A stretch of DNA of 64,000 nucleotides from Haplodiscus bocki (lineage: Eukaryota), in NCBI GenBank assembly GCA_965655095.1, contig OZ296650.1, positions 134,106,001 through 134,170,000 of the forward strand. The letters are read 5' to 3'. The notes under the pieces were generated by a model. That model worked only from the letters and a program-made list of their open reading frames with translations. It was not told where the DNA came from and ran no database searches. Position numbers and translations under genes: made by a program. Below, piece after piece: positions 4,422 through 57,424 of this stretch (the first letter of the stretch is position 1; the number at the start of each line of letters is the position of its first letter).

Positions 4422-5005
4422 CGTCATAACCGTCATTTTTTTCGGCAAAGTGGCCAAAAATTTTTTATCGTCGAAAAATTATTTTTCAAGTTATGGAGTC
4501 AATTTCATACTGGAGACACTCCAGAGCGCAAACTAGGTAGTTCAATGTGGGAGCTATGACAAAATGATCGATTTTCGGCATTTTTTTCGAAATTTGATGC
4601 GTCATATCTCCACACCTATGACGAGTTGGTGGAAAATTTTTTGCATGTGTGCAGCCAACAGTTATTATGCTTTACACAAAAAGTTTCGGCCAAATGCATG
4701 TGGTTACTTGCAGGGCGGTTGGTAAAAAACTGCCAAAAGGGGCCAAAAAACAGAATCATCCCGTCATAATTCGCCAATCATTTTTGCTAGAGTGATCTAA
4801 CTTGCACCATTGTTCTTAGAATTGTAAACTGTGCCTGCATGCAAAGTTTGAATCAAATCGTATGGGTAGGAGCTGAAATCGCGTGTACGCAGCACATGTC
4901 TGCATAGGGTCTTTCTCTATATATTACACCTCGGCAAAGGGGCCCCTCCCCCGCCTCGGAAAGGCCCAATGACGGGCGCAATCCCCTGACCCCCCAGTGG
5001 AGGCA
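4422..5005 (+). mobile_element. Right-terminal block of array unit S1 (left boundary not located)
   Basis: Starts with CGTCATAACCGTCATT and ends with GGGCCCCTCCCCCGCCTCG...CCAGTGGAGGCA, like all other units. Sequence upstream of ~4380 does not match the 5' half of S2-S4. Confidence 0.8.
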
Positions 5006-6049
5006 CCGGTGAAAATCACCAGGTGGCGGTCACTGTAGAGGCACCTCTGAAATATGAAATATTACTGATAGTCTTTTCTTCGAACACATTAATGAGTTTT
5101 GCAAATGCCTGTTTAATACATTGAAATTGAGCCTGTGAAATCTTCATTGAAAACGACAGGACATTGAAAGCGAAGCTTCCAAACAGTTGGGCCCCGTTGT
5201 TTCTCCGTGGCGCTTCGCTAATCTACGAAACAACGTGGCGGGGCATTTAACAATTTGAATTTCGAATTTTTTTTTTCAATTTTGGGCCAAATTATGATTG
5301 TTTTTCCAGAAAATTTCAATACTTCAACCCACGAAAGATGCTAAATTTCAAAAAGCTATAAAGTGAGACAATTCTGAAAAAAAAACAATAGAAAAAAATG
5401 CCAGATTTGAATTGTTGAATGAAAACTGGGTTTTTGGAAATTTTCAATTTTTTTCTGAATTGTTCGTCATAACCGTCATTTCTTTCGATATACTGGCCGA
5501 AAATTTTTCATCTTCGGAAAATTGCCTTGCAAGTTATGGAGTTGATTTCATACTGGAGCCACTGCAGAGGGCAAACTATGCACTTCAATGTGGGAGCTAT
5601 GACGAAATGGTCGATTTTCGGCATTTTTTTCCAAATTTGATCCGTCATATCTCAACACCTATGACGAGTTGGTAAAAAATTTTTTGCATGTGTGTAGCCC
5701 TTAGTTATTCTGCTTCACACGAAAAGTTTCGGCCAAATGCATGTGGTTACTTGCAGGGCTGTCGGTAAAAAACTGGAAAATGAGGCCAAAAAACAGAATC
5801 ATCCCGTCATAATTCCCCAACCATTTTTGCTAGAATGATCTAACTTGTGCCATTGTTCTTAGAATTAAAAGTTATGCCCGCATGCAAAGTTTGATCCAAA
5901 TCGTATGGGTGGGAGCTGAGATCGTTAATTCCCTATACCGTTTGTGCATATTTGTTTTTTCTTATATTTGAACGCGAGGCAAAGGGGCCCCTCCCCCGCC
6001 TCGCGAGGACCTATGTGGGGCGCAATCCCCTGACCACCCAGTGGAGGCA
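5006..6049 (+). mobile_element. Non-autonomous ~1.04-kb rolling-circle-type element S2
   Basis: Begins CCGGTGAAAATCACCAGGTGGCGG and ends CCAGTGGAGGCA. Homologous to S3 and S4, and shares the 3' block with the Rep-helicase elements A1/A2. No credible ORF. Confidence 0.85.
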
Positions 6050-7094
6050 CCGGTGAAAATCACCAGGTGGCGGTCACTGGTTATGACATTCTGAAACTTT
6101 AACAAAATTGCAAGTCTTCTCTTTCAACACAGTAATGATTTTTGCAAATGCAACTTTTATATATTGAAACTTAGCATGTGAAATCTTCACCGATATGGAT
6201 GAGACATCGAGGATGGAGCTCGCAAACATTTTGGCCCCGTTGTTTCTCCGAGTCGCTTCGCTAATCTACGAAACAACGGGGCGGGGCACTTAACATTTTC
6301 TTTTTCGAAAAATTTTTCCTCAAGTTTTTGCCAAACTTTGATTGTTTTCCCGAAACACTTCAGAACCTCAAACCACAAAAGGTGCTACAACTCAAAAAAG
6401 CTTTGCAGTATGACAATTTTGGAGGAAAATTTGACCAAAAAATGCCAGAATCGAATTGTAGAATTAAAACTGATTTTTTGTGTGAAAATTATTTTTTTTT
6501 CGAAAAATTCGTCATAACCGTCATTTTTTTCGGCAAACTGGCCGAAACTTTTTCATCGTCGAAAAATGTTCTTTCAAGTTATGGAGTTGATTTCATACTG
6601 GAGCCACTCCAGAGGGCAAACTATGCACTTGGATGTGGGAGCTATGACGAAATGGTCGATTTTCGGCATTTTTTTACAACTTTGATCCGTCATATCTCAA
6701 CACCTATGACGAGTTGGCAGAAAATTTTTTGCATGCGTGTAGCCCTTAGTTATTCTGCTTCACACAAAAAGTTTCGGCCAAATGCATCCGGTTACTTGCA
6801 GGGCTGTCGGTAAAAAACTGCAAAATGAGGCCAAAAAACAGAATCATCCCGTCATAACTCCCCAACCATTTTTGCTAGAATGATCTAACTTGCACCATTG
6901 TTCATAGAATTGTAAACTATGCCTGCATGCAAAGTTTGATCAAAATCGTATGGGTGGGAGCTGAGATCGCAAATTCCCTATACCGTATGTGCGTATTTGT
7001 TATTTCCTATATTTTAACGCGAGGCAAAGGGGCCCCTCCCCCGCCTCGCAAGGACTAATGTGGGGCGCAATCCCCTGACCACCCAGTGGAGGCA
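6050..7094 (+). mobile_element. Non-autonomous ~1.04-kb element S3 (diverged subfamily)
   Basis: Same termini as S2 and 1045 bp long. The 5' half is visibly diverged from S2; the 3' block is close. Confidence 0.85.
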
Positions 7095-10000
7095 ACGGTG
7101 AAATTTACTAGATGGCGGGTTTTTTTGCTTTCAATTTTTTTCCGGTATCAATTCTGGTGATTGGTTCGAAGTTCTAAATTTTTGTTTATATAATTGAAAA
7201 CTGTTGTTTGTTCTTTTTTTACGATACTTTTCTCCAGGCTGAAGATTAACTCGCACAGTGCAGATGCAACTGATACGCACAGAGTTCATCTCACACCGTA
7301 AATGTGGGGTTGTTCCTCAAAACCTAGTAAATTTCCTGTTTTTTTAAAGTTCATGACAGCAGCAATGAAGTATGGCAAACGTACTTTCCGGTCGATTTTT
7401 TCCCGAAGTCAGCTCAGAACAGTAAAGTAACAATTTTTCCACTTTATCAGCTGCTGAATTAAAATATAACTCCACAGACCTACCCGTTACCGGCTTCCAT
7501 AACAATGGAAGTTTTCAGTTCTGTTCCGTTCCATTTCTTGAATCCACTTTTTTCAAAGAAATCTTTTGGTTGCGTAATGAGTCATGTACTTGAAGCATTT
7601 CTTGCTGGTTCTCGTTGCCTTCTTTTGTGCTTCAGAGGAACAATATAGGTGTTGTGTGCTATTTCACATCAGTTGATTTTTTCAAAAAATGAAAATGTAC
7701 AGTTAGGTGTTCTGTACTAGACAAATTTATGAAAAAGAAGTTCTGCGCCATGACATTTCATCCACTATGTAACAATATTGTTCATGCGTCGTCCAAAACA
7801 TATATAGAATGCTGGATGCTTCCGGAAAATAAAAACATGAGAAAAAGTTACTGGTCATAATCATCATTGAATTGAGACAGTTGTGTTCATAAAATAATCG
7901 TCAACCATAAATTATGACAAGATGAAGGCCAATTTGATGGCGGATCAGTACTGATGTCGATTAAATATCTGCCTTCCATTTATGAAGTCGTGAAAGCAGT
8001 ACTTCGATTCTCTACATTTTGAGCTTTTGTCAACATGAAATGTGGTTAGTGGAAGCAACTTTAACAATATGTGGAGGTAACGTGTAGAGTTAAAACGATG
8101 CTTCTCTACTGTTGATGTCGGTTTTGAGTGTTTCCGATTTTGAAGATTTTACTGCTCTACAGACCGTTCAAAAATTGTTTGCGTTTCACAAATTCTTATA
8201 TCTGAGTTTTTCGGAAGAATATATCTGGTTGGTTTTGAAGCCTACTTATCGGAGTTTTGAACTTCTTTCAAAATAAGTTTTGATTTTTCTGTGAAAAAAT
8301 GCTTCTCGTTGTCAAAATAAAATATCCGCCGTTGAGCGAAATATGGCAACGTGTTATTCCTCTGAACTCATGCCGAAGTTAGTTTTTGGATAAAGTGTTT
8401 TGATATGGAATCATTATTTCTTTAGCGTCAACTCGACATTGCCAATTTCCCATCCCTCATTTGAACCCTCTGAAATAGATACTTTTCTCATGTCATTCGA
8501 TCGTTTGAACTTTTCATATTGTGAATCGTGACTCACTGAAGTCTCAACTGACTATGGTCAACATCGTATGGCTTCTGTCGACAAATTGAGCCAATTGTTT
8601 TGGGTAATTTTTTTAAATGACGTTTTCGTACACGAAGAATGCTGGATATTGTTTGTAACAATCGTTGCCTGAGTACTAGGTGTTCTTCCACAATTTCTGA
8701 ATTGCAAAGGGGAACTCCGCTGTTATCATCGTACATGAATTGCTAATGTTACTCATGAAGCATGAGAAACGTAAGAAAAATTGAAAAGTGTACAACATAA
8801 TCGTAACTTTAAATTTATACCGATGGATCCCAAAGATGATTGGCATTGAACGAACAGGGTCAACGGGCTCCTCAAATTTGAGCATGTTAATGGTTTTGCT
8901 ACGGAGGAGAAATTGTTTTCATTAATTTTTTACCCATCTACCGCCTAAAAGCTACAGAGTGTTAACGTGCATGTTCGCAGAACTACATTACCTATAGGTT
9001 TCTGACAAACTTGTTATTGTGTGCGCTATTTCATCGTGTTTTTGCTGGCATTGAAAGTTCTTCATGTTTGTGTTTCCTGTGAGGTTCGTTTCATTTTCTA
9101 TGTGAACAAACCAATCAATCGTTTTTACCATTGTTGGAACGAAATTCAAGATCGAATAACCATAATTCATATCATATTTTCAATAGTTTTGACCGCAAAA
9201 AATTGCCTTCTCCGACGACATTGTTTGGATTCGGACGCGCTTTGTGCAGATATTACCGAAAAAGCTGCGGAAAATACTTATTGATGAAAAGTACTGCCTC
9301 AACATTTATAGCAAACTGTGTGTTATCTTTGGCATGGAAGTACCACGCATCTGACTGTGGATCAACTTTGGGACGCACTTATCAGAAAACGATTTCTCTT
9401 TGACGGCAATTTCAATAACTTTCGGTAAATACTGAATGTTTACATTCTTCAGTTGTTCAAATGAAACTTTGACAAGGTTTAATTGTTAACATGTTTTTTT
9501 GCGGGGGAAAAAGACGGCCTCTTGCTGTTTCTTGTTTCAAACTTTCAAAAATCCCATCTGTTTTGTACAATAATCAATTTGAATGTTTTATTTTTAGCAT
9601 ATACATAATCGCTGTCGACATTATTGACTGATATTTTATTGATCAACCGCTGCTCTGAGCAATTGTTTTCTCAACTAAATCACCCGGTTTTTTCAGATTT
9701 CATAATTTCCTTATAATGCAATGATTTTGGAAGCCAAGATTTCCCCAAGAGAAAAACAAGATGGTGAGAATCTTTCAAACATAGTTCTCTAATTTGTTAG
9801 GCTTTCCGGTTTTCTACATGATGACGTTTTTTTGTGGTATCATTTTTCACGTCATGTCAGACTTCAGTCATAAACAAAAGGGCATAATTTCAGTTTGCCT
9901 GAATTAGTAGTAAGATCTCAGAAAAACTTTATTTTTTCTCCATTTCTTGCCTCCACATTTTTCATGATTACTCTTTTCGTGTTAACTTGCAGCCCTGCTA

Positions 10001-10570
10001 AAGTGCACACTTTTCCGAAACACCTTTGGAAATTCGTATGAGTTCGCTCAACACTCATGCGTTCTCAGTTGGTTTTTCCAACTGAACCTTGTTGGCTTCT
10101 AAGAACAATTGTGATGTGCATTGTAGTCTCTTTCACTGAGGATTGGGGAAAAAACTTTCGAATTCAACGAACTCGCCGTGTACACTACTAATTGACGGGA
10201 GTCCGTAACATCGGGATGCGTTCCACTTGTATGGGTGAACGGAAAATAAATTCTTATATACGATTTTCAAACAACACAAGATTCGCAATTAACACTCATT
10301 ACATCGCCGCCTCTACGAGTAAATACCTGTTTGTTTTCTTTCTCTGATGAATGCCTTGGTTTTGCTTCGTTAACTGCGCAAAACCAAGGCCCACATTGCA
10401 TATATTTTTCTGGATACTGCTTTTTTCGAATTCATTAGATGCTACCGTTAATTGAACAGTTTGAAAGTTTTGTACGTTGGTCCTATAGTGGCGCCCACTC
10501 TTTACAATGTATTCACTATTGAAGATGAGTTATTGATAAACTTTTGCGCGAAGTTTCTTGTGAAAGAGTA

Positions 10571-11587
10571 ATGCCATCTGGCAAGAATGATTTGAAAAGA
10601 CGTCGCTGTGCAAAATGTGGACGCTTCAGTGAACGTAATCACTCCTGTCCAAATAACACCGACAATGTTTCTTCAACTAGCGAACCATTAGGAATTTTGT
10701 ACAGTATACCTGACAGTAATTTGCTGGTCTCCTCTGTTGATGCCCTGCACTTAGAATCAACGTTGGAAGCGATGGGACTATCCTGTTCCCCAACAAGCGG
10801 CATAATTGGGAATAAAACTAACATTCGCCTCAGTTCTGTTCAACCCTCGCACAGTCTTTCTATAACGGGTGATGGTAATTGTCTTTTCACTGCCCTGGGC
10901 GTTGCCCTCGGTTTTTCTCATGAAAGTGGTCATGATTTGAGGAAACTTATTGTGAGTAACATGGACTCGGTGACTTTTCCGGAAAACAGTTTGCAAACCT
11001 CAATCTATTCCGCTGAGTTCCCCAACCAGAACAAACTTCTCACGAGCCCAACTGTCAACCACTACCTGCAGACATCGCGAATGGCAGAAAATGGAGTTTT
11101 TGGCACTTGTGTGGAAATTTATACCTTTTGTCAAATTTTTAATTTGGACGTTTATGTATACCACAATATTTTGAAAAGTTGGTTCGTTTACAAATGCGAC
11201 TGCTCAAATGACAGACAAGGAGTTTTCATTCAACAAACGCGAACTGGAGATCACTTTGAGGTAATTAGTGGCTTGACCGAAACATGCCACACTTCATTAC
11301 TCCTATCAGAAGATTTAGCTGGTTCGAGTAGTCAATGTGGAAATTCAGCAATGAATACTGACTGCCACGTAATCCAGACAGCACTTGAAGCACTTGATGA
11401 AACTGAGCCCTTGCAGAAGCGCAGACGGACTTCAGATTATCCAGTCGGCACACATTTGATCGACATTGGAGAAACTAATACAGCTGTGACATCTTTTTGT
11501 TTGGCGGAAGCTCTTTGTGGTGCAGAAAATACTACAAGGCAAAATGGAGGCCGTCCTCCAACTGCTGTGGAACATCGACAACATTAA
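10571..11587 (+). CDS. N-terminal CxxC knuckle plus OTU-family cysteine protease/deubiquitinase segment (A1)
   Basis: ITGDGNCLFTAL (catalytic D/C), GVFGTCVEI and GDHFE (catalytic H) are the OTU motif set. First ATG is at 10571. Confidence 0.85.
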   Translation: MPSGKNDLKRRRCAKCGRFSERNHSCPNNTDNVSSTSEPLGILYSIPDSNLLVSSVDALHLESTLEAMGLSCSPTSGIIGNKTNIRLSSVQPSHSLSITGDGNCLFTALGVALGFSHESGHDLRKLIVSNMDSVTFPENSLQTSIYSAEFPNQNKLLTSPTVNHYLQTSRMAENGVFGTCVEIYTFCQIFNLDVYVYHNILKSWFVYKCDCSNDRQGVFIQQTRTGDHFEVISGLTETCHTSLLLSEDLAGSSSQCGNSAMNTDCHVIQTALEALDETEPLQKRRRTSDYPVGTHLIDIGETNTAVTSFCLAEALCGAENTTRQNGGRPPTAVEHRQH

Positions 11588-14500
11588 TTTCACAGATTGC
11601 CTGGAGGTGAGTTGACTGATGAGATTTTCCTGAAATTAACTGAAAACTTTGTACCACCACCGAAATCGACTGAAGAATCAACCGTTGAAATCGAGTCAAA
11701 ATTGGTTGTGACAGATACTGTCGATGCTGCCAACATTTGTTGCAAGTGCATGCGTCAAGCCACGGTATATTTTCCGTTCGACATTAAGGCCTACAGCAAA
11801 GTTGGATTGGTTAATAGAAAGTTCGGCAAAAAGCTGAAAAACGAAAATGTACATCTGTGTTGTTTCTGTTATAACTATTGTACTGCACCAAAGGTTAACT
11901 GGCAAATGGCTTGGCCAGCTGTTTTTTTCACGCTCCTTTCTGATACTTCCAGACCCGAAGCTTCTTTAGTCGCTATTTGCTCGCTGTTACCCCTGGAAAT
12001 AAGGCAACATTGGCTAGGGGTAATTACCCTTTTCCCTATCTGCATCCAGCGTGTTTTAAATCGGCCGCGTATTCTTGGCACTTGTACTGTTGATGGAACA
12101 CAGAGATTGAAACGTTTCGAGCAACTAATGAGAACAATGAGACAAAAAGAAATGGCTGAAGCTTTGGACTTGGAACCGTATCCAAACATACGTTGCCCTT
12201 CTGGTTGTTGGACGTTTATCGAAGATCCTGGGTACATACCAGCGCAGCATTTTATAAACTTGATCGACAGAACTTTCACATCATTCCAAGCGTCTGCATT
12301 CAAAAAACTCAGAGGCGCCAGACTCGACTTTTTGCGCCCTTTGATGTGTTTAAAAACGTTTCTAGTGGCTGCCACAGTGCGGTTACATGAGAAAGAAGGT
12401 TTGGTTGTGCAAACTTGTTGTGCGCATGACAGGGGATGTGCGTTACAGTTCTTGCATCCCCCCAGGCATCCGGAGCTGGGACGAATTCCAACTTTGTTTG
12501 AGGAACGATTAGCCATTGCATCACCTTCATTGTCGTTTGTGAGTAGCTTAAAGGCTAATTATGCTAGCCACAACTATCAACTGTTTCGGAGCGTTGGGTC
12601 TTATAGTGGTATGAGTACTGTTTCATTGAGACGTAAACGGCGTTGGAACATCACTAGCAACCGTTTGTTCCAAGCTGAAGGAACTGTCATGTTTTTCAGG
12701 TCAGATATTCCCATTTTAATTAGACAATGGGTTGTTGAAGGTAAATTGATTGAAGATGTCGCCACTGATCTCTCTCAATATCAGCCGGAAAATGAAAAAA
12801 TGGCGGAGCATGTCGGCGTAGATCTTGACACCTGCATTCGATTGACGAAGGTGATGGACAAAAACGAACAAGAACTTTTGAGTAATGTGAAATTTCTTCA
12901 GTGCTACGCTTTGGCTCAACCAAACAATGAACATGGTTGCTCACCTCCTCCTCTGATCAATGATACTGGCGATACACTCTGGTTTCTTCAAGCAGCATGC
13001 TGCATATCTCCATTTTTATGTTCATCCATGGTGTCTGGCGTTAATCACGTTTTCGCAACAAATTTGTTTTCACTGTTGCGTCATACATTTGCTGGGTTTG
13101 GAAAAGAAAGCAAGTTGCAGCGTACTTCACAAGCTCAAGCTGACATTGACAGTATATTGAATAACGCGGCGAATAACAATGACAAGCCAAACATGATTTC
13201 AAACTTTTTTCAGGAGGGTGGCGTGGTGTTGCACGCATTATGTGCTGACTTATGCCATCTGCAGTTGAGCCAAAGAAAAGAATTAACTGAGAAAATTCTG
13301 CGCGACGTAACCGTGGATACGAAACACGTGATCGCTACAACAACTGATGTAAACAATCTGAGGAACAAGGTCAACCCACCTCTCAACGTCGTCCTATTTG
13401 ATGTCCCATTTGAGCTTGTGGGATGTGGTTGTGGTTCTCGGGGTACAGATGCTGTAATTTTGCTTCGGCACGGTGGTCGCTTCTGCAATTTTTGGCGTAT
13501 AGTGAAAGCTAACAAGTTTGCTGAACCTTTGTTGGACTCACCTGAGACCTTACTAGAAAAAATTCTACGAGGCTACTGGACTTTTTTAATCTACCGAGGA
13601 ACTAACTCTAAAAAGGTGTCGACTGTAAAGTGGCACTATCTTAGTAATTTAACCGGTCAAGGAATTTTCATTTGTGACAAACATGATGTTCCGTTAACGA
13701 GGGACTTCCGACGTAGCAACTACTTCTGTCGATGTGGAAGGTCATCATTCCTCAGATGTGCCTACTCAAAATGCAACAGTTGTGTGTGTAAGAAACACTT
13801 CGACGAGGGAATGAAACATCCAAACTTACGAGTTTTAGTTCGACCTACAGCAGAACAAAAATTAACGCCTGAAAAACCGACCGCTGAAGCTGCAATCATT
13901 GCTACACAGTGTGAACTGAATTCCAACTTAGGTAGTTTATGTGAGCAGGACAAAAGCGTTGTTGAACCAGATCTATCCATCAACTGTTCCAGTCAAAACT
14001 CAAGTTCATCATCAATAGCTTCTTTTTTGTGCAACAACATGAACGCAAACTCGATCAGCGAAAGTGAATTGGCGATGAATAAATTGAACGTGTGTTCCGG
14101 TGAAAGGGCCATTGTTGCTGTACAAGAGGCTTTCAGAGAAGAAGACTACAATATTCCTCTCCACATACTGTTGAATTCTCGATGCAACTTACTGTACAGG
14201 AAAAAAAGTCATCCCATTTCCCTGACCGTTAAGGAGAAACGTTTCATGGAAAACATTACAGCTTCTTCAACATCATCAACGCCTTTGCTTCAACCGGAAG
14301 GGCTGCTTTTTCCTTCTATTTTCTGGTGCCAAAGTTCCGATGGCAGCATTGAAGGAGCAATTCCAATATCCCTTTTCCAATCCGAGAAATACAACAAACA
14401 AGTGGGGTTTGCAGGGTTAGAGAACATGCTACGAACTCGCATCACTGATGGGTCGCTTTTAACCTCCAGTCACACATCATATCTTCAGTTCGTTTTTGAC

Positions 14501-14599
14501 TGTCTTTTAAACTTACAACTGAGTAAAACTGATATTCGAATTGTGTTGAACAGAGGCTGGCAAGAATTGGGCAGTACGCCTACTAATTACCAGTACTTT

Positions 14600-15730: not shown

Positions 15731-16341
15731 TCCCAAAGAGTTCAGATCAGGAATAGTGATTGAAAAAAAAATTGCGAGCACCATGAACTTCAGTGTTGTT
15801 TTTGCCGAAGCTGTTCGAATTCGGAAAAACTTTCTGAAGCTTCCAAAACATCGACAATTAACAAAAAATCAAGAACTGTTGTTGGCAGATGTGGAAGCGA
15901 GTTCAATTACGCCTGACAAAGTGACCATTTTTGGCCTGAGACCACCGGAGCTTCTGTTTGTCAGCAGTTTGAAAAGTTATTTCAGTTGGTTCGTTAGATT
16001 CAAATACAACATTTCGAAAGGGAAAAGTAGTCATGAGATTTTGTTGAGCCGTGCATCGTGTAATGATTTTTGGGTTGATTGCCTTGGATACGTAATCAAG
16101 ATACGCCCACCCGCTATCTTTGATTTTCTTGATTTTTGTGCAACAAGAAGTGGTAACCCGAGGGACGAATTTTTGAAAGAGGAGTGCCGCAAACACATTG
16201 TCCCCAAATTGCAAGGAGCCAACAGTTGCCCCAGACTAGTGGCGTACAATCTTTGTTTCTCAGATCAAAAAGCCATAGTGGTTTTCACAAATACTCTGCC
16301 CAGTAGTCCAACAAAGTTCTTGTTGCACTTTGTGCTAACAT

Positions 16342-47098: not shown

Positions 47099-50000
47099 CT
47101 AAAAGTTTTGCATGCATTCACAGTCCAGGGCTGTCTCGATGCCAGTAACTTTATACAAATCCATACGAACATGACATTCTGACAAGTAATCTGCAAGCGT
47201 TAGCATCACATTCGAATAATTCCGATTAAGCATTGCTCTTTGCCAATCCTGTTCAAAAGAGTAACGGCTTCGTGAAACGGCGTTGGAAAAGCCCGTCACG
47301 TAGGCAACTAGAGCCCAGGGTCTTCTTTCAACAGGCTTTGTCAATGCACTCCCAATTCCCGAATTATGCTCCTGCAATCGCCGCCGCAACTTCTTACAGC
47401 TTCCGATATAAAAAATTCCCTGTGTTTAACAGTCACCAACAAATAACAGAAACCAATTGCCGAAAGGAGTACATCAAAAAAACGTAAGGGAAACGGATAA
47501 AATGTTTGGGTCGTTGAAACACTGGAATTACGCCTGCCACGAGACGACAAAAAGTTATCTATCAAAGGTACCAAATGGCTATCTTTGCGGCAAAGAAGAT
47601 TAATTGCATCAAGTGTCCGCTGCTTGTCACCGACATACGTTATGTGGGAAAGATCAGTGACCCGACTAACAACTACATAAAGCTGCTCTTTCAGCCAGTA
47701 GGAGAATTTTTTACAACCAACAATCTGTGTTGCCAAGTTTGGAACAGTGTCACCCATTACTTTGTGAACTGTTGAAGCCACATACATTTTCAAAGGAAAT
47801 TGAACACGTCTGCAAACGGTGGAATTGCTATACTTATGGAGAACGCCAATTCTTTTACGAACAACTACAAGCCTCCAGGAATTAACGTCCGGGTTATTAG
47901 ATGACACAGACCTTACTCCGGCTGGTGCAACTCTAACAACAATATGAGGATCAAATTCATCGATCGACTCTACTAAACACAATTGTCCCTGGAACAGTTT
48001 CACCGATGGCAAATTGCAAGTTAAGCGCAATACACACCCAACATGAATAAACAAAGACTCTGGCTCTAGGCAACTTCTGTTGCGAAACTTCGTCATGGGT
48101 GCTGATGCGGTAACCCAATTCTGAGTTCCTGTATTTGACATTTCATCCTTACATTGGAAAGACACACTCTGTATGTTTTGATGTGTTGTTACAAAAGATA
48201 TTCTTTCTTCCACGGCCTCTTTTTCCGCAACTCTAGTACTGAACACTCTCAAACTATCCAGAGGGACTACAGACCAAGTGCTTACAAAATTACAGAATTT
48301 CTCAATTATTTCACAACACTCTTTAGCCATGCTTCTGTCACAGGATATTGAGACAGCAAGTCCAGAACTCTCTTTCCTTGTTGGTTCTGCATCCTCACAT
48401 AGTGCTTCAAATACCGAACCTCGAAATTAGCTAACACCGAGTTGCTCAGCAAAAGGAATGTTCCCGTAGGAGGCGGAAGTTGACGAAAATCACCTGTGCA
48501 AATAACAATCTTTCCTCCAAAAGGAACATTGTTTTCAGACACGGCTTGCAACACATTGTCCATTGCGGACCAAAGTTCAGCTGAAATCAATGAGACTTCC
48601 TCGACAAAAAAAACATCCAAACTCTCCAAAAAAGTAAATTTTACAGGATCACGAGCAAGACTGTTCAATGCATGCGAAACTAGATGACTCACCGTTTCAT
48701 TTTGAACGACGGGAAAAGGGATTAAAGCGTTTATGTGTCTTCCGCCGAAAACTGAAGCTCTCTCCGCAGCGACACTGGTTATGACGCATCTCAATCCTCT
48801 AGCTAGAGCCGCAATCACACAATGAATTAGCACATGGCTTTTTCCTGTGCCTGGTGGACCAACTATGAACTGATGTTTAATAAAAGCGGTCGTACAAGAA
48901 GAATAATTATCGTACAAAGAACAAACGTAATCCAAAATCTTCTGTTGATCATGCAATGATTCGTCAGTCTGATTGCGCGCTTTATGTATCTTCTGGCTCC
49001 AAGTGAAAGGACGTGCTAAGGTAGCGTTCATCAATTGTGCATACGTTGGTAAACCAACATAACCCCCATTGACAACTGCACACAAAAGACTCTCTTTTTG
49101 CGCACTTAATTCGTCTGAAATGTTGCTGTCACTCTGCTCCACAATACTCTGTTCTAAAACGCGCGGTTTTGAGCACGGGAAAACGACTGAAATATTTTGT
49201 GCTGCTTCCTGGATGCACAAATAGGCACTGGTAACAACTCGATCTAGTAAAGTTGATGATCCTGGGTAAAAGCGTAGTTGTTCAAGCACAAAGCGCCGAA
49301 CAACATCACTAATCTCGGAATCTTCGCATCCCAAAGGAGACCTCGCCAAAGAAGCCTCAAAGAACGCAGATTTCAAATCCGATTGCGAAAAAATGTCAAG
49401 TTCGGTTACGTATTCTCCAAGAGACAACAGAATGTGGGTCAAAAAATTGGTTGTGTTCCTCGGAACAACGTTCGACAAAACAACTTGAGTTTGACAAGCC
49501 TTTTTCTCATAAATGAACTTGTGACTTGAACTGCTCGTTGTACATGCAATGGCTTCACGACATTGCGTGGAAAAACGAGGGACCCCACTAGAAAAGTTGT
49601 TACAGTAGCTGAAAAAAGCCTCTTTGTACAAGGAATTAAGGTTATGCAATAGCCGAGGCCATCCACCCAACAGGATTTAGTTACATTTTTCTTTAGTAAA
49701 CTTTCTGGTGTCACTTTTAAGGGCTTTCGGAAGCGGCAGAACCAAGTGAAAAACTTTTCCACTTTGAGCACAGAAGTTAGTTCGGGGGGACGTACACCAA
49801 AAACTGTTATCTTGTCTGGAGAAAGAGAACTTTTTTCTGCATCAATTATCAGCAGCTTCTGATTATCCGTGAAGCAACGGTGAGGAGGAAAGCCCTTGCT
49901 GTGTCTAATAGCACTCTGCCGCCCAAAAAGAGGACCTTGATTGCTATTAGAAAGTCTGCATTTCGGTTCAATAACTATTCCAGCCCGTTTCTCTCGCGGG

Positions 50001-53000
50001 CCAGTGACAACGTGAATGAATTGAATATTGGTCACTACGTAAGGAATTTGCAATGACCACCATACAGATTCCGTTAAACACAAAATGCGAGAGTTAAAAC
50101 ACTTTTTATTCGGTTCTCTTTCCTTGTTCATATTGGTGAAGTACACCCCGGCAATTTTGTTGTTCACTTGTTGATGAACATGGAAATCATACAAATGTGT
50201 TCCACTTGACGTAGAAATAGAAACTTCGGTGCGTTCCTCCACGCCTGCAACATATTTTGACAAATAACGGCTACTCATGTAAATGTCGCAAATTTGTAGA
50301 TTGGTGCTAGATCGGACGAGGGCAAAAATTTTGGCGTTTGTTGGAGAAGTGTGCGTGTTACTTTCTGTTGGATAATGATGCTTGCCATCACAAAGACGCT
50401 GATCAAGGGTGACAGAACAATCAACATCACTCGACTCAGCTAATCCGATCTTCTTCAAAACTGCGATCGTTTCCTCAGACAATTCCTTGTGAATACATTT
50501 GTAGGTAAAACTAGCACAAGGAGGGTATTTGGGCACTCGGCAAGTTTTTTTTTCAATTTGTCAGTTTTTTTCTGACAACGAAATTTAGCTTTAAAACGGC
50601 TGTGTGATTGGTAACCGTTAAACAAATCTCGTAACTCGGTCAAGTCATCCAAACTATAATGGTGCAAACCAACTTCAGTCACTAAGTTCCCCAGAAAAGT
50701 TGTTGCCGAGCAACAAACTCTAGACCTTACTGCTTCACTAAAGCAATCTTCTGCCGTCCAAATCAAGGCATGTACATGAGGGAACCCACTGGCTTCATCT
50801 TGAAACTCATATCGATACCAAATCTTACAAACTTTTCCCAGTGGCTGCTCGGGTGACGTTTCAATGTATTTCATGACAAGACGAGAAGTTCGCTCCCATG
50901 CTCTGAACATTGTGACCATTTCAGATTGTATCGCTGATTTTCGGTCTTCCTCTTTACATCCAGCGCCTCAAAGTCTTTCGGAAACTTTGCATCCAGCGCA
51001 CTGAAAATTTTTCTCAAGCCAGGATGCGTCGACTGCCCACAACTGTAACTGAAAAAATATGTAGCTGGCCGATCTTTCAAAGCTGCTCCCAGTTCGTTAA
51101 CATTTTTCCGAGAATCACATTTATCGAAAAAAATTGCACCTTCTCGCATGGCATGAACATTCTTTCTTTGCCGAGCCGCTTCACTCCAACCTCTGTTCAA
51201 AACAATTCTGGTGTCATTGACACGCAGCTGTAGGTTAAATATTGTGTCAAATACGTATTGGACGTAACCAGGATCTGATGACGTCAACAGAGACGAATCT
51301 TTCAAGCGCGTTTGTAAATGTTGTTCTAAACTTGCGAAACCGAGCAATTCGTTTTGCTTCTGATCATTATACAAAGGAGAAGGTATTGCACCAGAATAAC
51401 TGCCGTCTGCGTTTTGGTGCCAAAAGATGGACGGAAACAACATGGCTTCCGGCTGAAGCAAAGGGACAGAGTTAGGGGGCGACGTCGCGGTGATATTCTC
51501 CAAAAATCTTTTGTGTCTAGCTGCAACATACAACGGAGACCCTTTACTCCTTTTCAGTAAACCGCATTGGCCATTCAATAAAACATGTAGTGGGAGCTGA
51601 AAATCAGTGCTGTCTATTCGGAAATCACGTTCCAAAACAACAGTTGAATCTCCAGCTGCAGTTGTAACAGGCAGCGAAACATGCGATCCCTCAGACTCTT
51701 CCTCTAAAATCCCAGGGTTGGTAACAAATTCCGAGGATGCGACCGTGTTGGTAGGCGATGTGGACCGGTTTTGTGAAGAGACAGAAACACGACTATGGCC
51801 ACAATCATCTAATTGACTTGAATCGCACGCTGAGCTTTTTGTGGACTCACCAAAGATCCTTTTCTTACCATCAAATACAAACTTCTTTTCCTGACTTTCA
51901 TCTTTAGAATGCATTCTGCAAACACTTGCCGAACAACCAGACACTAGGCAACGTAAAAAAGAACTTCTGCCACATGAGCATTTGAAACCACTGGAAGGAA
52001 AGTCACGGTAAGTAACAGAGAATGGTTCTTACAAAAGAATTTTCCTTGACCTGCCAGTGTTTCAAAATACTTTGACCGCATCTCACTAACATCGGCAGAC
52101 GTCTGCCGATAGTAAACACAGATATTCCAATAGTCATTTATAAAGTGATCAACCGCTGTATCACAAGGCAGCCTCACCTGTTCAGGGAAAATACTTTTGC
52201 TTTTATACACCCAAAAACTTTGAAAAACACCAACATGCCTCAAAAGAATGTTACTACGAGTCGCTAAACCTTCAGTAGCAATAAACTTCAACTCGAAAAC
52301 GGAATGATTAGTTTGAAAATTAAGAGGAGCTTTGAATTTAGAACGCAAAGTATTTACTCCAGCGTATGAAAAAAGTATGACATTTACTCCATCAAAATCC
52401 TGAGTTTCCAAAAAATGCATAATATCTTGACGGCTTGCTACGTTTTCATGAATGACATTGTCACAAAATTGTGAGACACCGAAACTGAGGCAACGAGATG
52501 GACTTTCCGGAAATCTTGTAAACAACTGCGATAGTTCATCACTCATGGAAGCATCGACAGTTTTTCTTTTGCAGCGACTGAAACTCGGAAAAACTACAGG
52601 GTCCAAAAAATGCAGCAAAGGAAACATCGCATTATCAACAGCAGCTGCATCAGATATACATCGACACAGTTGAGGAGAAATGCAGAATAAAGTTTGCAGC
52701 AACGACAAAAAGTAAGTCTTGGAGCTCAAAATGTTTGGAGGAGAGGAACCAAAAGAATTCGGAGGCTGAGCGAACGTCACAGACTTGAATTTTGAGCACA
52801 AGCGTTGTCCGTCAGTCAACCCAGGAAAAATGAATAAACGATACGTATCCGTTATAGACACACTTGTTGATGCGGAAAGACAAACAGCCGATTGTTCAAT
52901 GTTGGGTTTACTTTGAATGCCTTGTCGGATTTCATCAGTTATTTCGCCAGAGGACACTAAGTTATTCAAAAAATACTGAATATCCCTTCGGTAAAAACTA

Positions 53001-55441
53001 CATTGAGATTCCACCTTCACTAACAGATCCGAAGTAACATCCCAACGGCGTTTAGAGCTCAAGCGAATGCTGCTAATTCCTGAAAAATTACCCACAGCTT
53101 TCAACAACTGGAAAGTGTGGCTAGCGTAATTCGCTTTGGCATTCTTCAAAGTACGCAAATTTGGAGCAACAAATGCTAATCTGTCGTTGGTAGGAACACT
53201 GAGCCGTCCTAGAGACGGGTGCGCAGGCGGGTGAAGATATTGCAGCTGAGACCCATTGTTATGACTGACACAAGTTCCTACAACAAGGCCATATGCCTCA
53301 TGCACACTGACAAAGCCGGAAACATCAAACGCATCCAAGACTTTCATTGGTTTCAAGCAATCGTCTCTTGCACCTCGCAAATGGTTCAAGTAATCAGAGT
53401 TGAACGATGTGAAAGAAGGCAAAAATCCATTTAGAAGGTGGTTGAAACCGATTTGACCGGTTTCTTCAACAAATGTGAAACAACCGAAGGGACATCTACA
53501 ATTTGGATAACATTCACTATCTAAGGCTTCCTCCAAATCAGTGAAAACACCCGAATTTATTTTGTTCAGAAAAACTTGCTTCCGTTTTGTTATATCAACT
53601 AGAACAGCTCGATCAGCCATAGAAACAGCAGGATGCAAATGTTGACACATAGCCCAGCTGTCGCGTATTTCGGGAGGTAAAAAAGAAACAAGTTTTTTCA
53701 TAGTACAATCTCGAATGCTGAGATCTTTCAGTAACGAATGAATAACGGAAGGCCAAGCATACCGCCAAAAATTTCCGTCGTTATTGTAATTGAAACAATT
53801 CTGGCAGACAAAACAGGTACCAGTAGGTCGCAAACCAAATCTCCTTCGTTTCATTGCTTTCTTTTCAAGAATTTGCCATTGCAAAGGATACGCAGCAGTT
53901 GAAATTCGACAACATTTACCGCACATTTCTCTACTTTGTGCTTTGTCGCTTGAAAAAGAGGACTTGAAAACACAATAGTTACTCGAGGCATCCACCTGAC
54001 GACATGCCTTATCTTTCTCCACTATCATTGTGGCTGTTTCATTGTGTGCGGATTGCGTGGATTGAATCTCCTGAGGCAGGGAATTGAAGCAAACGCCTGA
54101 AATGAAAGGATCATAATTAGTACCAATTTTTTCACAATCAAATTTCGCTCCACTGAAAGAATTGTTGCCGGGCAACAAAAGGTCGTTGTGCATACCGCCG
54201 AATCCAACAGAGGATGATGTGAGGCCTTCATCGCTCAAAAGAGGCAAAACCTTAACCTCACAACACGCAGTACATTTTGACGAACAAGTGTTCTTTTGAA
54301 ATGATGTGGAAACCAGATTTTTTTGTAAGGTCGTTTCTCTCAATGAACTCTGGAGGCAACCATCAGGCAATATTTGCTGAGAAATTGGAATTTCTGCAGA
54401 CAACACTGCTACCGTTTCAAAATGATTACCTGCGTGAGTATGTACCAAGAACACAGATGAAACGTCCATTGAAGCACGATCTCCGGCATAGCTATAGACT
54501 ATCCACAATTTTGTCATGCAATGGTAAACGTAAACATCAACCACCGCAATTTGGGCGAAGCCATAGATCTCTAAACAAGTGCCATACACACCACTCGATC
54601 GCATTCCGGAACGATTCAAATATTCGTTCACGTTTGAAGCTGTCTGTACCACAACATTTCCATCAATGGTTGTGTAAATTTCCAAAAAATGCGGAGCAAT
54701 ATCTAGCAAAGGTAAGGCCGAACAAATACGCTGGCGTAACTTTGAATGATACCAAGTTTGTGAACCAATTGACACAGCTAAAGCAGAGAACAAACAATTA
54801 CCGTCACCTGGAACAGGATGAAATTGTGATGGAAGCAAACTGTTCAAAGAATTGGCACCCAACAAATGCGTGTTCAATGGTTTCCCCACAAACGGTACTC
54901 CAAGCTCAATGCAAACTCTCGTCAAATTAGCGTTTGTGCGAGAAAAAGCTGTTGAATTCGGCACGTTTGAGAAAAGACTCATAGTATTGAATGGTGCAGA
55001 AGACAGCGACCGATCAAAAAAGTCTTCACCAACTGATGCTCTCTCCATTGATGATTGGAAACAGGAGCAGTCTTTGCTGCCATAAAAACGCCCACACGTT
55101 ACGCACTTCCTGGGCTCTCTGCAGAATTTCTTTTTTTTTGGCGGGCCAGGGTTGGTTTCTATACCACTTCTCAACAGAAACAAAAGTAACATTCTGCGAG
55201 TCATGGAAACCTCACGAGAATTGCCGACCCTCAAAAACTGCAACTGATCCTGAATTAACACAGAAACATAAAACTCCCCAAAGGTGACATCTGAGCTGAA
55301 CACTTCCACAACATTGTTCACATAAACAGGTCCATCTTTTTCCGAAATTGTCAATAAAGAAGACCAAATCATAAACAAAGTTAAAAAAATTGAGTACACC
55401 ATTTTCTGAAAAAGAGATTTTTCAAGACTCTGTACAGACAC
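47099..55441 (-). pseudogene. B1 polyprotein: leader/2A-like, OTU, Cys-rich region, HUH Rep, Pif1, GIY-YIG; about six frameshifts
   Basis: Seven consecutive ORF fragments carry VPGDGNCLFSAL and GNHFE (OTU), RYEFQDEASGFPHVHAL and SRYLSKY (Rep), GPPGTGKS, GDFRQLPP and QLYVVVSRV (helicase), RRLQEHN and RPWALV (GIY-YIG). Confidence 0.88.
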
Positions 55442-56405
55442 TCAGTGGCGGCGCCTACATCAATGAAACTCATTCAAAGAAGAATTTGATAAAGCCACAT
55501 GCGTTACACAAAAATATTCTGTACAGAGTAAAATAATGTTAGAGCAATTGAATTGAAAAAAGATTCACGGTGTTGAATAATTCAAGTTCAGCAATTAAAC
55601 TACTAATTTTCTCCTAATCGCCGTTTCGTTTTTAATGGCGAAGGTACCATGCATGAATAATTTCAGCAACACTTTGAGTTCTTGAAAAATTGATTACTTA
55701 AATACGGTTCAAATCCAAAACAGAATGAGGACTGTTGGTGTTGTACACCAAACAAAGGAAACTCCTGAGTAAATGTAGTCTCAAGATAATCCTTGCAAAA
55801 TGCAAAAGTGGTGCTTGTTGAACGCCAACCATAAATTGTCCAAACATTTAGCAATTACAAAACACACTCCAACGTACAACGCCCAAAAGAGGTTGAAATC
55901 ATGCAATGGAGACCTGAAAAGTTCGAACACTGGAGATTTCTACGAACAAACATAAAAACGAAAACGAAGGAACGTCAAATTTGGTCAGAACAATAATACG
56001 ATAAAAGCAAAATTTCTGGCAAACAATTCAAATTGAATGCACATATTCGTCAGAACTTTCATTTATTTTTCAAAATGCATGACACGCAATGGAAGTATTC
56101 ATTGCATTCTACAACCAACAAAGAGCCCTAATCCATGATTTAAATTATGTATGACAATTTACTTGATGAGATGTAAAGGTAAGTTTAAAAAATGTAAGTT
56201 ACATAAAAAACGCCTAACTAGTTTAAATTTGTGGTTAGCAGAAAAAACTATCTCATATGGGGTAGAATACGGTCAAAGTGTCAACATCCATCTGTGTGGG
56301 AGCTGTGTAACGTTGTTCGGCGCCTTTTACGCGCAAAAACGATCATTTCCTGAAAAATTATTTTTTATAGAAAAAAATTATCTGTCATTTCCGTCATTTT
56401 TTTCC

Positions 56406-56754
56406 CGTCATATCCGTCATTTTTTTTCTCGTCATTTTGACCGAAAATTTTTGGCCAATCAAAGTCAATTGCCGGTTCAGTTTTGGCATCCTTAGCGAAG
56501 GATAGCTTACGGGAAAAAGTTGGTTTTGGCGATCAAAAATGACGGATTGACGCATTTTTAGCAAAAATCCGAAAATTCATCAGCGCCTATCTCCCATACG
56601 AAAACAGCTGGGCCAAAAAGTTTTGGCATGCAAATTGTTCAAATCATTTGTGCCTCACACACAAAATTTGGGCCAATTGTATCGGGTAGATGTGGAAATA
56701 GAGCGATGAGAAGTCAAAATCGGGGCAGAAAACACGATCATTCCGTCATAACTC
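56406..56754 (+). repeat. Truncated, diverged copy of the subterminal block
   Basis: CGTCATATCCGTCATT ... GGCCAAAAAGTTTTGGCATG ... TTGTGCCTCACAC ... GATCATTCCGTCATAACTC aligns with 23451-23800. First-to-last CGTCAT spacing is 338 nt versus 340 in S2. Confidence 0.75.
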
Positions 56755-56755
56755 A

Positions 56756-57424
56756 TCACGTTGTGAATGGAAAAAGTGGATCGTCCGCTTCTTCTTCCAC
56801 GTCCCTGGAAATGATGCGTGCGGCGACAGTCCACGACGAAACTGAATTCTTTTGTAAGCAAGCGCACACCGTGTCATTTCTGAGAACACGACGGTCGCAC
56901 ATAATTCCAGAACACGTAGGTGATATAATGTTTCCATGCAAAAACAACAAGTTTCTACTGTTCAGAGTGTAATGGAACATTGCTGGTGTGCTGGGTAAGG
57001 AACTAATTGGAATTGGCGGGAAATCTGCATTGGTTACGTTGTTGATAACAACGATCGCCCGATGAGTTTCAATAATCGGATTGTTTCGGTCATTCCCTAA
57101 ACACGTGTTCGAATATATAGGCTCTGTAACCTCTACAACAGAACCAACAGTAAGATGACGATCCGAGAAAAGTTTAGCAGACTTCTGGGCGGAAGCTGAG
57201 ATGACGACAAAACAATCTTTACTATTCCATTGACCAATAATAGCCATTCTGTCATATGTCCCTTCAGGAAGTGGGCGTTTCAATTTTGTAGCTTGAGGTC
57301 TAAACAACTGAAGTGGCCGATCACTCTTTTTCAGGACCAAAACTATCCCCCTTATTACAGTGTTTTGGCTGTTGCGCAGGAAACCCTCGCCTGTAACTTC
57401 AGCAACAGTTACTTGTCTATTCAT
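56756..57424 (-). pseudogene. 3'-truncated copy of the 330-aa accessory gene (B2)
   Basis: Matches the B1 protein up to EEADDPL, then runs into unrelated sequence. Confidence 0.85.

Follow-up and report, generated by a model that had tools for sequence, protein, structure and literature searches.

The window (the whole stretch of DNA analyzed, 64,000 nucleotides of contig OZ296650.1 from the Haplodiscus bocki assembly GCA_965655095.1) contains units of types S, A, and B joined head to tail (Table 1). The S units are ~1044 bp long and mutually 85-95% alike, A1 and A2 are 99.2% identical across 16.9 kb, and B1 and B2 are 90.9% identical. S and A units are only ~62% alike in the ~583-bp subterminal block that they share. 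At the left side of the window, homology of S1 to the other S units begins near 4306, with no left-end (LTS) motif upstream, and the flank from 1 to 4305 matched none of the sequences fetched and contains no ORF longer than 116 aa. At the other side, the first base of B2 is equivalent to B1 position 43535, and no right-end (RTS) block that could end B1 was found downstream of 42015 in the window. The preliminary description of this DNA had included the B-B pair in the train; the B1|B2 joint at 56774/56775 lacks the core found at the other junctions and is a deletion-type joint.

Table 1. Units, genes, and example termini in the window
Feature	Position	Strand	Description
S1	4306..4994	+	5'-truncated S-type unit; subterminal block and RTS only; RTS end mutated to CCCC
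S2	4995..6038	+	Non-autonomous, 1044 bp; sister to S4
S3	6039..7083	+	Non-autonomous, 1045 bp; young subfamily, ~99% identical copies in two other arrays
A1	7084..24021	+	Autonomous-type, 16.9 kb; Rep ORF split near 15150; RTS end mutated to GACC
A2	24022..40970	+	Autonomous-type, 16.9 kb; ORFs longer, intact
A2 ORF, 347 aa	27482..28525	+	Equivalent of A1 ORF 10544-11587 at 16.9-kb offset
A2 ORF, 1609 aa	28535..33364	+	HUH Rep domain, two tyrosines
A2 ORF, 774 aa	33282..35606	+	Pif1-type helicase, then C-terminal SLX1-like GIY-YIG nuclease
RTS example (A2)	40916..40970	+	GC-rich block, small hairpin ending 9 nt before end, terminal CACC
S4	40971..42015	+	Non-autonomous, 1045 bp; sister to S2
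LTS example (S4)	40971..41012	+	Begins CAGTGGAGGCA; S-type units with CAGTG...CACTG terminal hairpin
B1	42016..56774	+	Autonomous-type; decayed; left end in array direction, genes on - strand
B1 Pif1	48306..49670	-
B1 Rep fragment	50455..50919	-
B1 OTU-like	51944..55441	-
B2	56775..64000	+	Second B copy without first ~1.5 kb; leaves window at its edge

Proteins encoded by the A and B units

The 1609-aa ORF of A2 retains intact Rep motifs (FVTYTC, PHIHALV, and the two-tyrosine YVAKY), and its Rep domain occupies approximately residues 1000-1300. Its match to Pfam Helitron_like_N (E 4.7e-6, 27.4 bits) was slightly below the cutoff of 28.9 bits; all of its Atlas neighbors were Helitron_like_N clusters, and a PDB sequence search with the Rep ORF gave no match. 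The 774-aa ORF matched PIF1 (1.8e-12) and GIY-YIG (1.6e-9) in Pfam, and Pif1 (1e-12), SLX1 (4xlg; 2.8e-6) and, weakly, the Helraiser helicase (1.2e-5) in the PDB. An OTU match (Pfam PF02338, E 1.9e-5) was obtained on the A1 ORF at 10544-11587, but not on its A2 copy. For B, Pfam detected PIF1 at 2e-13 and a weak OTU match (0.0054) under the cutoff. Pfam gave no match to Exo_endo_phos (AP endonuclease) in A or B, no match of any kind for the accessory ORFs of A and B, and no integrase domain in any large ORF of the window. The elements belong to a lineage with autonomous members of 15-17 kb, which encode OTU, a two-tyrosine HUH Rep, Pif1, and an SLX1-like GIY-YIG nuclease, and with many non-autonomous members of 1-1.4 kb.

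Junctions and termini in the window and beyond

The sequence CCCAGTGGAGGCA occurs six times in the window, always on the + strand, ending at 5005, 6049, 7094, 24032, 40981, and 42026, compared with 0.03 occurrences expected by chance (no shuffled sequence reached six). Each copy is flanked by TGAC(C/G)(A/C)CC on the upstream side and by CCGGT, ACGGT, or AAGGT on the downstream side. Comparison of the flanks revealed no spacer, filler, or target duplication at any of these junctions; bases left of TGAC follow the type of the upstream unit, and bases right of GAGGCA follow that of the downstream unit. Both the six filler-free and duplication-free junctions and the tracking of each neighboring unit by the bases outside the core had been pointed out in the preliminary description, and both were borne out. 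That description had also put the crossover within a core of ~19 nt. Tracts of identity do end inside the core, but the cut it implied lies 11 nt too far right. A second class of left ends begins TAG... and lacks GTGGAGGCA; CAG-class and TAG-class left ends have only YAG in common, yet both are joined to the same right ends. Because the TAG-class left ends fix it there, we placed the cut at CACC|YAG, and the element boundary in the window is CACC|CAG at 4994, 6038, 7083, 24021, 40970, and 42015.

Right ends consist of a GC-rich block, a small hairpin, 8-9 nt, and the terminal CACC, and left ends begin with YAG. A hairpin of at least 3 bp that ends 8-9 nt from the end was present in 11 of 12 RTS classes, compared with 0-3 classes at other offsets, and the stems covary among classes (GGGG/CCCC, GACC/GGTC, TCTC/GAGA, AACA/TGTT, GCT/AGC, and GAA/TTC). 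A second invariant block of 19 nt (GGGCCCC...CCTCG) precedes the core by ~35 nt. In nine elements, no asymmetric terminal inverted repeats were detected: the longest complementary stretch linking the first 30 nt with the last 100 nt measured 5-6 nt, no more than in shuffled sequences; this test scored exact runs, and imperfect repeats may escape it. At loci L003 and L012, a search for left ends of the elements with inverted cassettes found none. A stem-loop spanning the junction was present only for S-type left ends (z = -3.75), and the A|A junction gave z = +1.5. An IS608-like guide tetranucleotide (GGTG) was considered and dropped, as it is absent from some left-end classes. Internal TGACCACC sites in A and B were unused in the few copies seen.

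Beyond the window, we catalogued ~43 junctions on 11 contigs, in which 12 or more RTS classes are joined to at least 10 LTS classes; the first 33 junctions alone contain 18 distinct RTS-LTS pairings. All catalogued junctions read CACC|YAG, apart from two with single substitutions, and lie on one strand at each locus. The helicases of families that share junctions are 32-67% identical, with the lowest values at 32-40%. The solitary copies with random flanks that the preliminary description had named as evidence against its reading were not found: every intact right end examined (~43 on 11 contigs) adjoins a left end, in a sample drawn from a single assembly, except for one 1-kb JGI contig, and biased toward arrays because most loci were reached through proteins of autonomous elements. 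None of the loci showed an array bordering on clear host DNA; neither positions 1-4305 of the window nor L004:1-1000 is clearly host. The latter segment ends in CACC without a right-end hairpin, and the left end at L004:1000 is the only one without a recognizable RTS upstream. A scan for the 19-nt core in JGI metagenomes and in IMG/VR returned one genuine S|A-type junction, on the 1-kb contig, and two chance bacterial matches, with no viral match in IMG/VR. A search for additional S arrays with a spurious ORF inside an S unit yielded no new contig. Logan contigs of the four runs that hold the stretch were 80-330 nt long and broken at every repeat, and word depth in Logan contigs was ~100 times greater for termini and S units than for B.

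Evidence for insertion at junctions and competing explanations

The S3-type units of the window, L001, and L014 share ~99% identity but not their neighbors, and the tracts of identity terminate inside the 19-nt core on both sides. Gene conversion was rejected as the source of this pattern, since the chance that both tract ends fall in a core of ~20 nt within a 1045-bp period is ~4e-4. Two whole units distinguish contigs L013 and L014, which are 99.2-99.8% identical, and both differences fall exactly at junctions. The empty counterpart of each difference is a seamless junction with no duplication or filler; one inserted unit has only 68% identity to its neighbors and the other 86-87%. In place of one S3 copy, a sister contig of 99.5% identity has a seamless empty joint. 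The L013/L014 pair may represent paralogues and not alleles, and its filled and empty sites could alternatively reflect precise excisions or deletions between repeated junctions.

A1, A2, and the L002 copy differ from each other by 0.5-0.9% and occupy three junction contexts, whereas the surrounding S units differ by 5-15%, such that a young A family (~1% divergence) is placed between older S units. S2 and S4 are sisters that flank S3-A1-A2, and L001_a and L001_c are sisters that flank L001_b. A1 and A2 carry 50 and 33 private substitutions, respectively, compared with 92 in the L002 copy, and may themselves be sister copies; read-through or concatemer formation is a further possible source of homotypic dimers such as A1-A2.

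We propose that these elements form a Helitron-like rolling-circle lineage for which the 3' terminus of a resident relative is probably the preferred integration site, an interpretation drawn from comparing sequences. Integration at the termini of resident relatives, as the preliminary description had suggested, is supported by the filled and empty sites between 99.5%-identical contigs and by the young units (~1% divergence) between older sister units. In this model, Rep would act first at the left end of its own element, nicking the top strand where CACC meets YAG, the helicase would unwind up to the right end, and the second tyrosine would cut 3' of CACC. The freed strand would probably be circularized, as in Helraiser and IS608, and inserted at the RTS-CACC|N site of a resident element, a site that the same enzyme would recognize and nick. 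A new unit would thereby be intercalated at any existing junction or array end, two identical junctions would be recreated, and later deletions would blur some joints. We infer this enzymology (nicking, strand transfer, and circles) from other HUH systems. The target may require the RTS only, the RTS plus YAG, or just CACC. A stronger form of the proposal, to which we give an even chance, is true site-specific integration: the HUH transposase, perhaps aided by the fused SLX1-like GIY-YIG nuclease, would recognize the hairpin and CACC of any relative and seamlessly insert single-stranded circles of up to 17 kb, the lineage would live almost only in its own arrays, and the system would be a functional analogue of an integron.

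Host recombination, either homologous or by single-strand annealing, could instead act through the ~19-nt core and its partly conserved flanks to integrate excised circles or to remove units, in which case the transposase would not choose the site. Flanking each unit are identical repeats of 19 nt and a right-end block of ~75 nt that is partly conserved, and any filled/empty difference is formally equivalent to a crossover or deletion between those repeats. However, perfect identity at the junctions spans only 19-20 nt, which is far under that needed for efficient homologous recombination in animals, and the upstream invariant 19-nt block is never the crossover point. Moreover, no chimeric right ends were seen at the S|A, A|S, X'|A, and A|D junctions, and the same right ends are used by both left-end classes despite their scant similarity. 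We regard host recombination as improbable.

Junction-to-junction strand exchange mediated by Rep between arrays or sister chromatids, comparable to origin recombination by pT181-type or geminivirus Reps, would swap array segments, with no insertion of free circles, using the same chemistry and cut site, and would also be expected to give precise, polar, heterotypic junctions. By contrast, single intercalated units with both flanks kept, as in L013/L014 and for S3 in L001, would require two coordinated exchanges one unit apart, whereas circle integration yields such intercalation in one step. Exchange of this kind is an unlikely source of the arrays.

There is only a slight chance that the arrays arose as concatemers through rolling-circle read-through or bypass of the element end, were reshuffled by unequal exchange between sister chromatids, and moved as composites, without resident termini serving as targets. 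Tandem Helitron arrays derived from concatemers are documented (PMC5148889; PMC11934779), the private substitutions of A1 and A2 would fit such an origin if these units are sisters, and pairs of Sc and S units, which recur in both L004 and L011, suggest higher-order repeat units. This explanation does not account for 99%-identical S3 units among different, older neighbors in three arrays, with tracts that end in the core. A single-unit indel by unequal exchange, for a unit 68% identical to its neighbors, would leave chimeras, and the 18 pairings among 33 junctions would require many independent joinings. These pairings, together with the young units between older ones, support the view in the preliminary description that read-through alone cannot give the mixed order. 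The low S/A similarity in the subterminal block and the absence of chimeric blocks also exclude unequal crossover within the 583-bp block, an outcome that would have spoken against the earlier reading.

Last, an assembler that mis-joined repeats at the common core, to which the broken Logan contigs might point, is a negligible concern: a second assembly record (ENA contig ctg85902) has A2|S4|B1 in the same order, 99.957% identical over 20,993 bp, which disposes of the assembly-artefact order that the preliminary description had allowed for, the 11 array contigs have 35-94x coverage, an S|A-type junction is present in the unrelated JGI metagenome contig, and units differ from each other by many private differences.

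Relation to Helitrons and other known systems

Helitrons are usually described as entering AT or TT dinucleotides almost anywhere, and their tandem copies are put down to read-through. In the present arrays, an entire radiation of families with one 7-nt joint and a fixed-spacing hairpin appears to land on each other's ends, and this radiation includes helicases down to about one third identity, some inverted gene cassettes, and several left-end classes. Tandem Helitrons are already known; systematic targeting of the joint, backed by filled and empty sites, is not known from earlier cases. How eukaryotic HUH transposases choose their targets could be tested directly on the basis of the model proposed above, which also suggests what the GIY-YIG nuclease, present in place of the AP endonuclease of Helentrons, may do. 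Should the specificity be genuine, the enzyme would be a candidate tool with which to insert long DNA seamlessly at a specific sequence; if site-specific integration is true, it would be a natural sequence-specific integrase for large cargo and part of a eukaryotic cassette system.

HUH one-strand chemistry, subterminal hairpins, and a fixed left-flank motif as target (TTAC for IS608; GTTC or CTTG for IS91) also characterize the IS200/IS605 and IS91/ISCR elements, which excise and integrate seamlessly through a circular intermediate. Those elements differ in being bacterial, in using a Y1 or Y2 enzyme without helicase fusion, and in having a right end that does not recreate the target, so that arrays do not build up. 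Integrons resemble the present arrays in their one-directional order of unrelated cassettes, their hairpin-forming end site, and their short conserved core joint, and integron cassettes are thought to enter as circles at the recombination site. In contrast, integrons depend on the IntI tyrosine recombinase, an attI platform with a promoter, and cargo genes that serve the host, whereas here some of the cassettes carry an HUH-type enzyme, the transposon is its own cargo, and neither a platform nor a promoter was found. The integron-like array proposed in the preliminary description stands as an analogy of layout but not of enzyme; no large ORF of the window gave an integrase domain.

An HUH Rep with two tyrosines, a downstream Pif1, a hairpin near the 3' end (about 10 nt from the end in this superfamily), and no target duplication place the elements in the Helitron-like superfamily. 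Their ends (YAG... and ...CACC) are not those of Helitron1 (5'-TC and CTRR-3', with A/T insertion), and the asymmetric terminal inverted repeats of 8-15 bp typical of Helitron2, which pair the 5' end with sequence upstream of the 3' hairpin, were not seen in the exact-run test of nine elements. With Helentron/HLE2 elements they share a Rep-Pif1 transposase, an upstream OTU cysteine protease (by the match in A), a nuclease fused C-terminally to the helicase, many short non-autonomous partners with common termini, a hairpin in the 3' subterminal region, and the absence of target duplication. The gene cassette is inverted relative to the termini in some elements here (B1), as in some HLE2-type families, namely Helitron-2_CRe, FoHeli, and the Paramecium elements (PMC3627910, PMC5148889, PMC13085455). 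Unlike Helentrons, the present elements carry an SLX1-like GIY-YIG domain where the AP endonuclease is found at the C-terminus of RepHel, and one HLE2 family bearing GIY-YIG has been reported, in Sphagnum (PMC11417382). Their ends are YAG...CACC rather than T..., and CACC precedes left ends and YAG follows right ends in place of the T/T or T/C insertion in T-rich DNA of Helitron2 and Helentrons, whose junction is T|T. Moreover, Helentron copies are dispersed, whereas the copies here lie in multi-family arrays.

Precise, filler-free RTS-LTS joints are likewise formed by tandem canonical Helitrons of bat, maize, rice, Drosophila, and Metarhizium, and in subtelomeric arrays of Hydractinia. In maize, two different Helitrons form a precise head-to-tail pair through consecutive insertion (PMC2267711), Helitron derivatives of cnidarians make long local arrays (PMC11934779), and Helraiser produces circles with a precise RTS-LTS joint (PMC4778049). 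These tandem canonical Helitrons are isolated pairs or homogeneous amplifications, whereas the present arrays unite at least 10 families at one conserved 7-nt site, with filled/empty evidence. A DNA transposon that targets its own terminus would gain a safe haven, much as R2 does in rDNA and the telomere-specific Helitrons do in Paramecium. The latter, which cap germline chromosomes, form a divergent clade in which orientation is strictly biased, integration has an inferred specificity for telomeric repeats, non-autonomous derivatives are numerous, and ORFs vary in orientation (PMC13085455); their target is the telomeric repeat of the host, whereas the target here would be the element's own right end.

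Units and junctions of the array

The 13-nt sequence CCCAGTGGAGGCA was confirmed six times in the window, all on the + strand and where the preliminary description had placed it, compared to 0.03 expected from shuffles of the window. In the aligned junctions, ~19 nt were unchanged, the left flank tracked the upstream unit and the right flank the unit downstream. These window junctions were free of filler and duplication, in agreement with the earlier claim of clean joints with unit-specific flanks. Self-comparison of the window gave four short, non-autonomous S units (~1044 bp; 85-95% alike) and, of the autonomous type, two A units (16.9 kb; 99.2% identical) and two B copies (90.9% identical). 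S1 lacks a left end, and the sequence upstream of its homology is unlike the rest of the window and every fetched locus. Neither the core nor a terminal motif is present at the B1|B2 joint. Because the first base of B2 corresponds to B1 position 43535 and B1 has no right end, this joint is of the deletion type, and a former B|B junction seems to have been removed by the deletion.

Coordinates of features in the window and in related loci
Feature	Coordinates	Remark
Sequence upstream of S1	1-4305	no ORF >116 aa
S1	from near 4306	start of homology
S3	6039-7083
S4	40971-42015
A1	7084-24021
A2	24022-40970
B1	42016-56774
B1|B2 joint	56774/56775
Ends of CCCAGTGGAGGCA copies	5005, 6049, 7094, 24032, 40981, 42026
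Element cuts	after 4994, 6038, 7083, 24021, 40970, 42015
Blocks bearing CGTCAT	5465-6038, 23450-24021	and equivalents
Rep ORF, A1	11597-16424	split near 15150
Rep ORF, A2	28535-33364	one ORF of 1609 aa
Overlap of Rep and helicase-nuclease ORFs	16342-16424 (A1), 33282-33364 (A2)	different frames
Internal TGACCACC octamers	21687-21694, 38641-38648, 50054-50061, 63314-63321	in A and B
S3-like copy with deletion	L001:15552-15575
Sequence upstream of first S unit	L004:1-1000
Left end without recognisable right end	L004:1000
S-type right-end fusion	L010:4408-4470
Non-LTR retrotransposon region	L012:19896-22529

On their + strand, the A units carry genes for an OTU protease, for a Rep (Helitron_like_N), and for a Pif1 helicase with a fused GIY-YIG nuclease, whose closest match is SLX1. 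The three rolling-circle motifs are present in Rep, HUH and two tyrosines among them. Because the Rep ORF is undivided in A2 and split in A1, A2 is the better candidate for an active copy. The overlap of the Rep and helicase-nuclease ORFs of A could be due to an intron, a programmed frameshift, or the production of two proteins; in the L001, L004, and L010 elements, these are likewise called as separate genes. The B genes specify the same kinds of protein on the - strand and are decayed. In two more autonomous families (L003 and L012), the genes are inverted relative to the termini, as in B, an arrangement known in Helitron2 (PMC3627910), FoHeli (PMC5148889), and Paramecium Helitrons (PMC13085455).

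Element boundary and right-end structure

Related loci, all in ENA assembly ERZ26859043, were fetched through the helicase-nuclease protein and proved to be arrays of the same kind as the window. Right ends of the A or S type in L002 and L003 terminate in ...TGACCACC, and the left end that comes next is a different one, which starts TAGA... and has no GTGGAGGCA; further TAG-class left ends are present in L009, L010, and L012. Since these left ends without GTGGAGGCA follow the same right ends, the boundary between elements is CACC|YAG, which is 11 nt to the left of the cut previously placed after CCCAGTGGAGGCA, where assignment of the exact phosphodiester in CACCYAG needs host-flanked ends. The proposal of a shared junction point stands for the invariance of the core and is corrected for the position of the cut. 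Left ends of S, A, and B open with the 11 nt CAGTGGAGGCA. An L001 copy that is 99% identical to window S3 has an 11-nt deletion in its left end, where CCGGTGAAAAT is absent.

In every right end, a GC-rich block precedes a small hairpin, whose 3' arm ends 8-9 nt before the terminus in 11 of 12 right-end classes, compared to 0-3 classes for any other offset. The stems vary with pairing kept (GGGG/CCCC, GACC/GGTC, TCTC/GAGA, AACA/TGTT, GCT/AGC, GAA/TTC), and this predicted structure is the 3' hairpin typical of Helitrons, set at a constant distance from the cut. A stem-loop spanning the junction is formed by S-type left ends only. In S as in A, CGTCAT motifs occur ~570, 561-564, and ~230 nt before the right end, at positions that agree within 3 nt in blocks that are only ~62% identical, and may be protein-binding iterons.

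We catalogued ~43 junctions on 11 contigs: 33 from the window and eight other loci, three more from L012, and seven from L013/L014. The first 33 comprise nine right-end classes, ten left-end classes, and 18 distinct pairings, and L012 added three right-end classes. CACC|YAG is present at all junctions but two, each with a single CACC substitution (window 4994 and 24021). Within any locus, all junctions share one direction, and no intact right end in the catalogue abuts anything but a left end. The helicases of families sharing the junction are 32-67% identical to that of A. Only one left end, in L004, has no recognisable right end upstream; CACC still precedes it, a hint that the left flank requires no more than CACC. 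The sequence upstream ends in GAGACACC, has no GC block or hairpin at the 8-9 nt offset, and may represent the edge of an array or a type of element that escaped recognition. At the internal TGACCACC octamers, YAG is never next and no insertion was found in the copies seen, and the octamer by itself does not seem to be enough for targeting.

Two other arrangements were noted. In L010, an S-type right end without the terminal CCACC (5 nt) abuts the region just before the first ORF of an autonomous element; the resulting chimera begins with the left end of an S unit and finishes with the right end of the autonomous element. L012 contains an inverted-cassette Helitron-like element, for which no left end could be located, and next to it an ORF with a PHD finger and a non-LTR retrotransposon (endonuclease and reverse transcriptase).

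Probable insertion at junctions and its alternatives

Four lines of evidence argue that the mixed unit order was made by insertion at junctions, and support the earlier suggestion that it goes beyond read-through and arose by integration at resident termini. First, L013 and L014, two contigs of one assembly, are 99.2-99.8% identical over shared sequence, and the only differences in unit content are two whole units, seen as filled and empty sites. L013 alone has Sc (1057 bp), which lies between Sb and Sd, and L014 alone has Se (1045 bp), which lies between Sd and Sc2; in the other contig, the neighbours meet seamlessly at CACC|CAG. Unequal crossover is not an option for Sc, because it is only 68% identical to its neighbours. 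Second, members of the S3 subfamily (window, L001, and L014 copies) are ~99% identical and have different neighbours; Se is 98.7-98.9% identical to window S3, and the high-identity tract of the window-L001 pair stops within the 19-nt core at both ends. Gene conversion was considered for S3 and rejected, as both tract ends would fall in the core by chance with a probability of ~4e-4.

Third, among 15 S units compared, those flanking intercalated units are mutual closest relatives: S2 and S4 around S3-A1-A2, L001_a and L001_c around L001_b, and L011_a and L011_d around two units. These sister flanks are as would be expected for older tandem pairs split by later arrivals. Fourth, the A family is young by sequence divergence (A1, A2, and the L002 copy are 0.5-0.9% apart, with 50, 33, and 92 private substitutions, respectively), and its copies occupy three contexts (S3|A1, A2|S4, and X'|A|D) in which the surrounding S units differ by 5-15%. 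The A1|A2 junction alone is uninformative on insertion, and this pair may be a dimer formed by read-through or from a concatemer.

We infer a mechanism by analogy to Helraiser and to IS608 and IS91. The two-tyrosine Rep would cut at the left end, between CACC and YAG, and the helicase would unwind as far as the element's own right end, where a second cut would release a strand to be circularised. The circle would be joined into a resident right end (hairpin plus CACC) recognised by the same enzyme. Because the incoming element too ends in hairpin-CACC, each insertion would recreate the target, and arrays would grow by intercalation in a single orientation. Speculatively, the SLX1-like nuclease might cleave the opposite strand, or the GC-rich palindromic block when this is folded into a structure. 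Helraiser circles contain a precise joint of right and left ends (PMC4778049).

Rep-mediated exchange between junctions, a close variant of this insertion model, is improbable. Host recombination via the 19-nt core is disfavoured to a like degree: the identical stretch is too short, and no crossover falls at another invariant 19-nt block, ~35 nt upstream of the core. Read-through plus unequal crossover accounts for A-A and some higher-order repeats but fails for single-unit intercalations, and is the least probable of the three.

Known systems and the assembly

Tandem Helitrons (PMC5148889), one heterotypic head-to-tail Helitron pair (PMC2267711), arrays derived from Helitrons in cnidarians (PMC11934779), target-specific Paramecium Helitrons with orientation bias (PMC13085455), and an HLE2 family with GIY-YIG (PMC11417382) are documented. 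Our literature search found no description of arrays in which several families share a single conserved joint, backed by filled and empty sites. The domain architecture is like that of Helentrons, whereas the nuclease, termini, and target differ. Unlike those of Helitron1, the ends are not TC...CTRR; they are also not T-rich. Asymmetric terminal inverted repeats of the Helitron2 type were looked for as exact runs in nine elements and not found.

The unit order is very unlikely to be an assembly artefact. A2|S4|B1 recurs in L015 (ctg85902; 94x coverage), a contig that equals window 33192-54182 (99.957% over 20,993 bp) and possibly derives from the same reads. An S|A-type junction is also present on a JGI metagenome contig. 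Of the words of the window, 5-7% were found in coral metagenomes, the one clue to the host. In Logan contigs of four runs, which fragment at repeats and are informative for word depth only, depth across window 39800-43800 was ~10^4 over termini and S units compared to ~10^2 over B. Among the Logan loose ends are joints of G-type right ends with S-type left ends from other places in the genome, and several loose ends are GATCGATC, which suggests Hi-C libraries.
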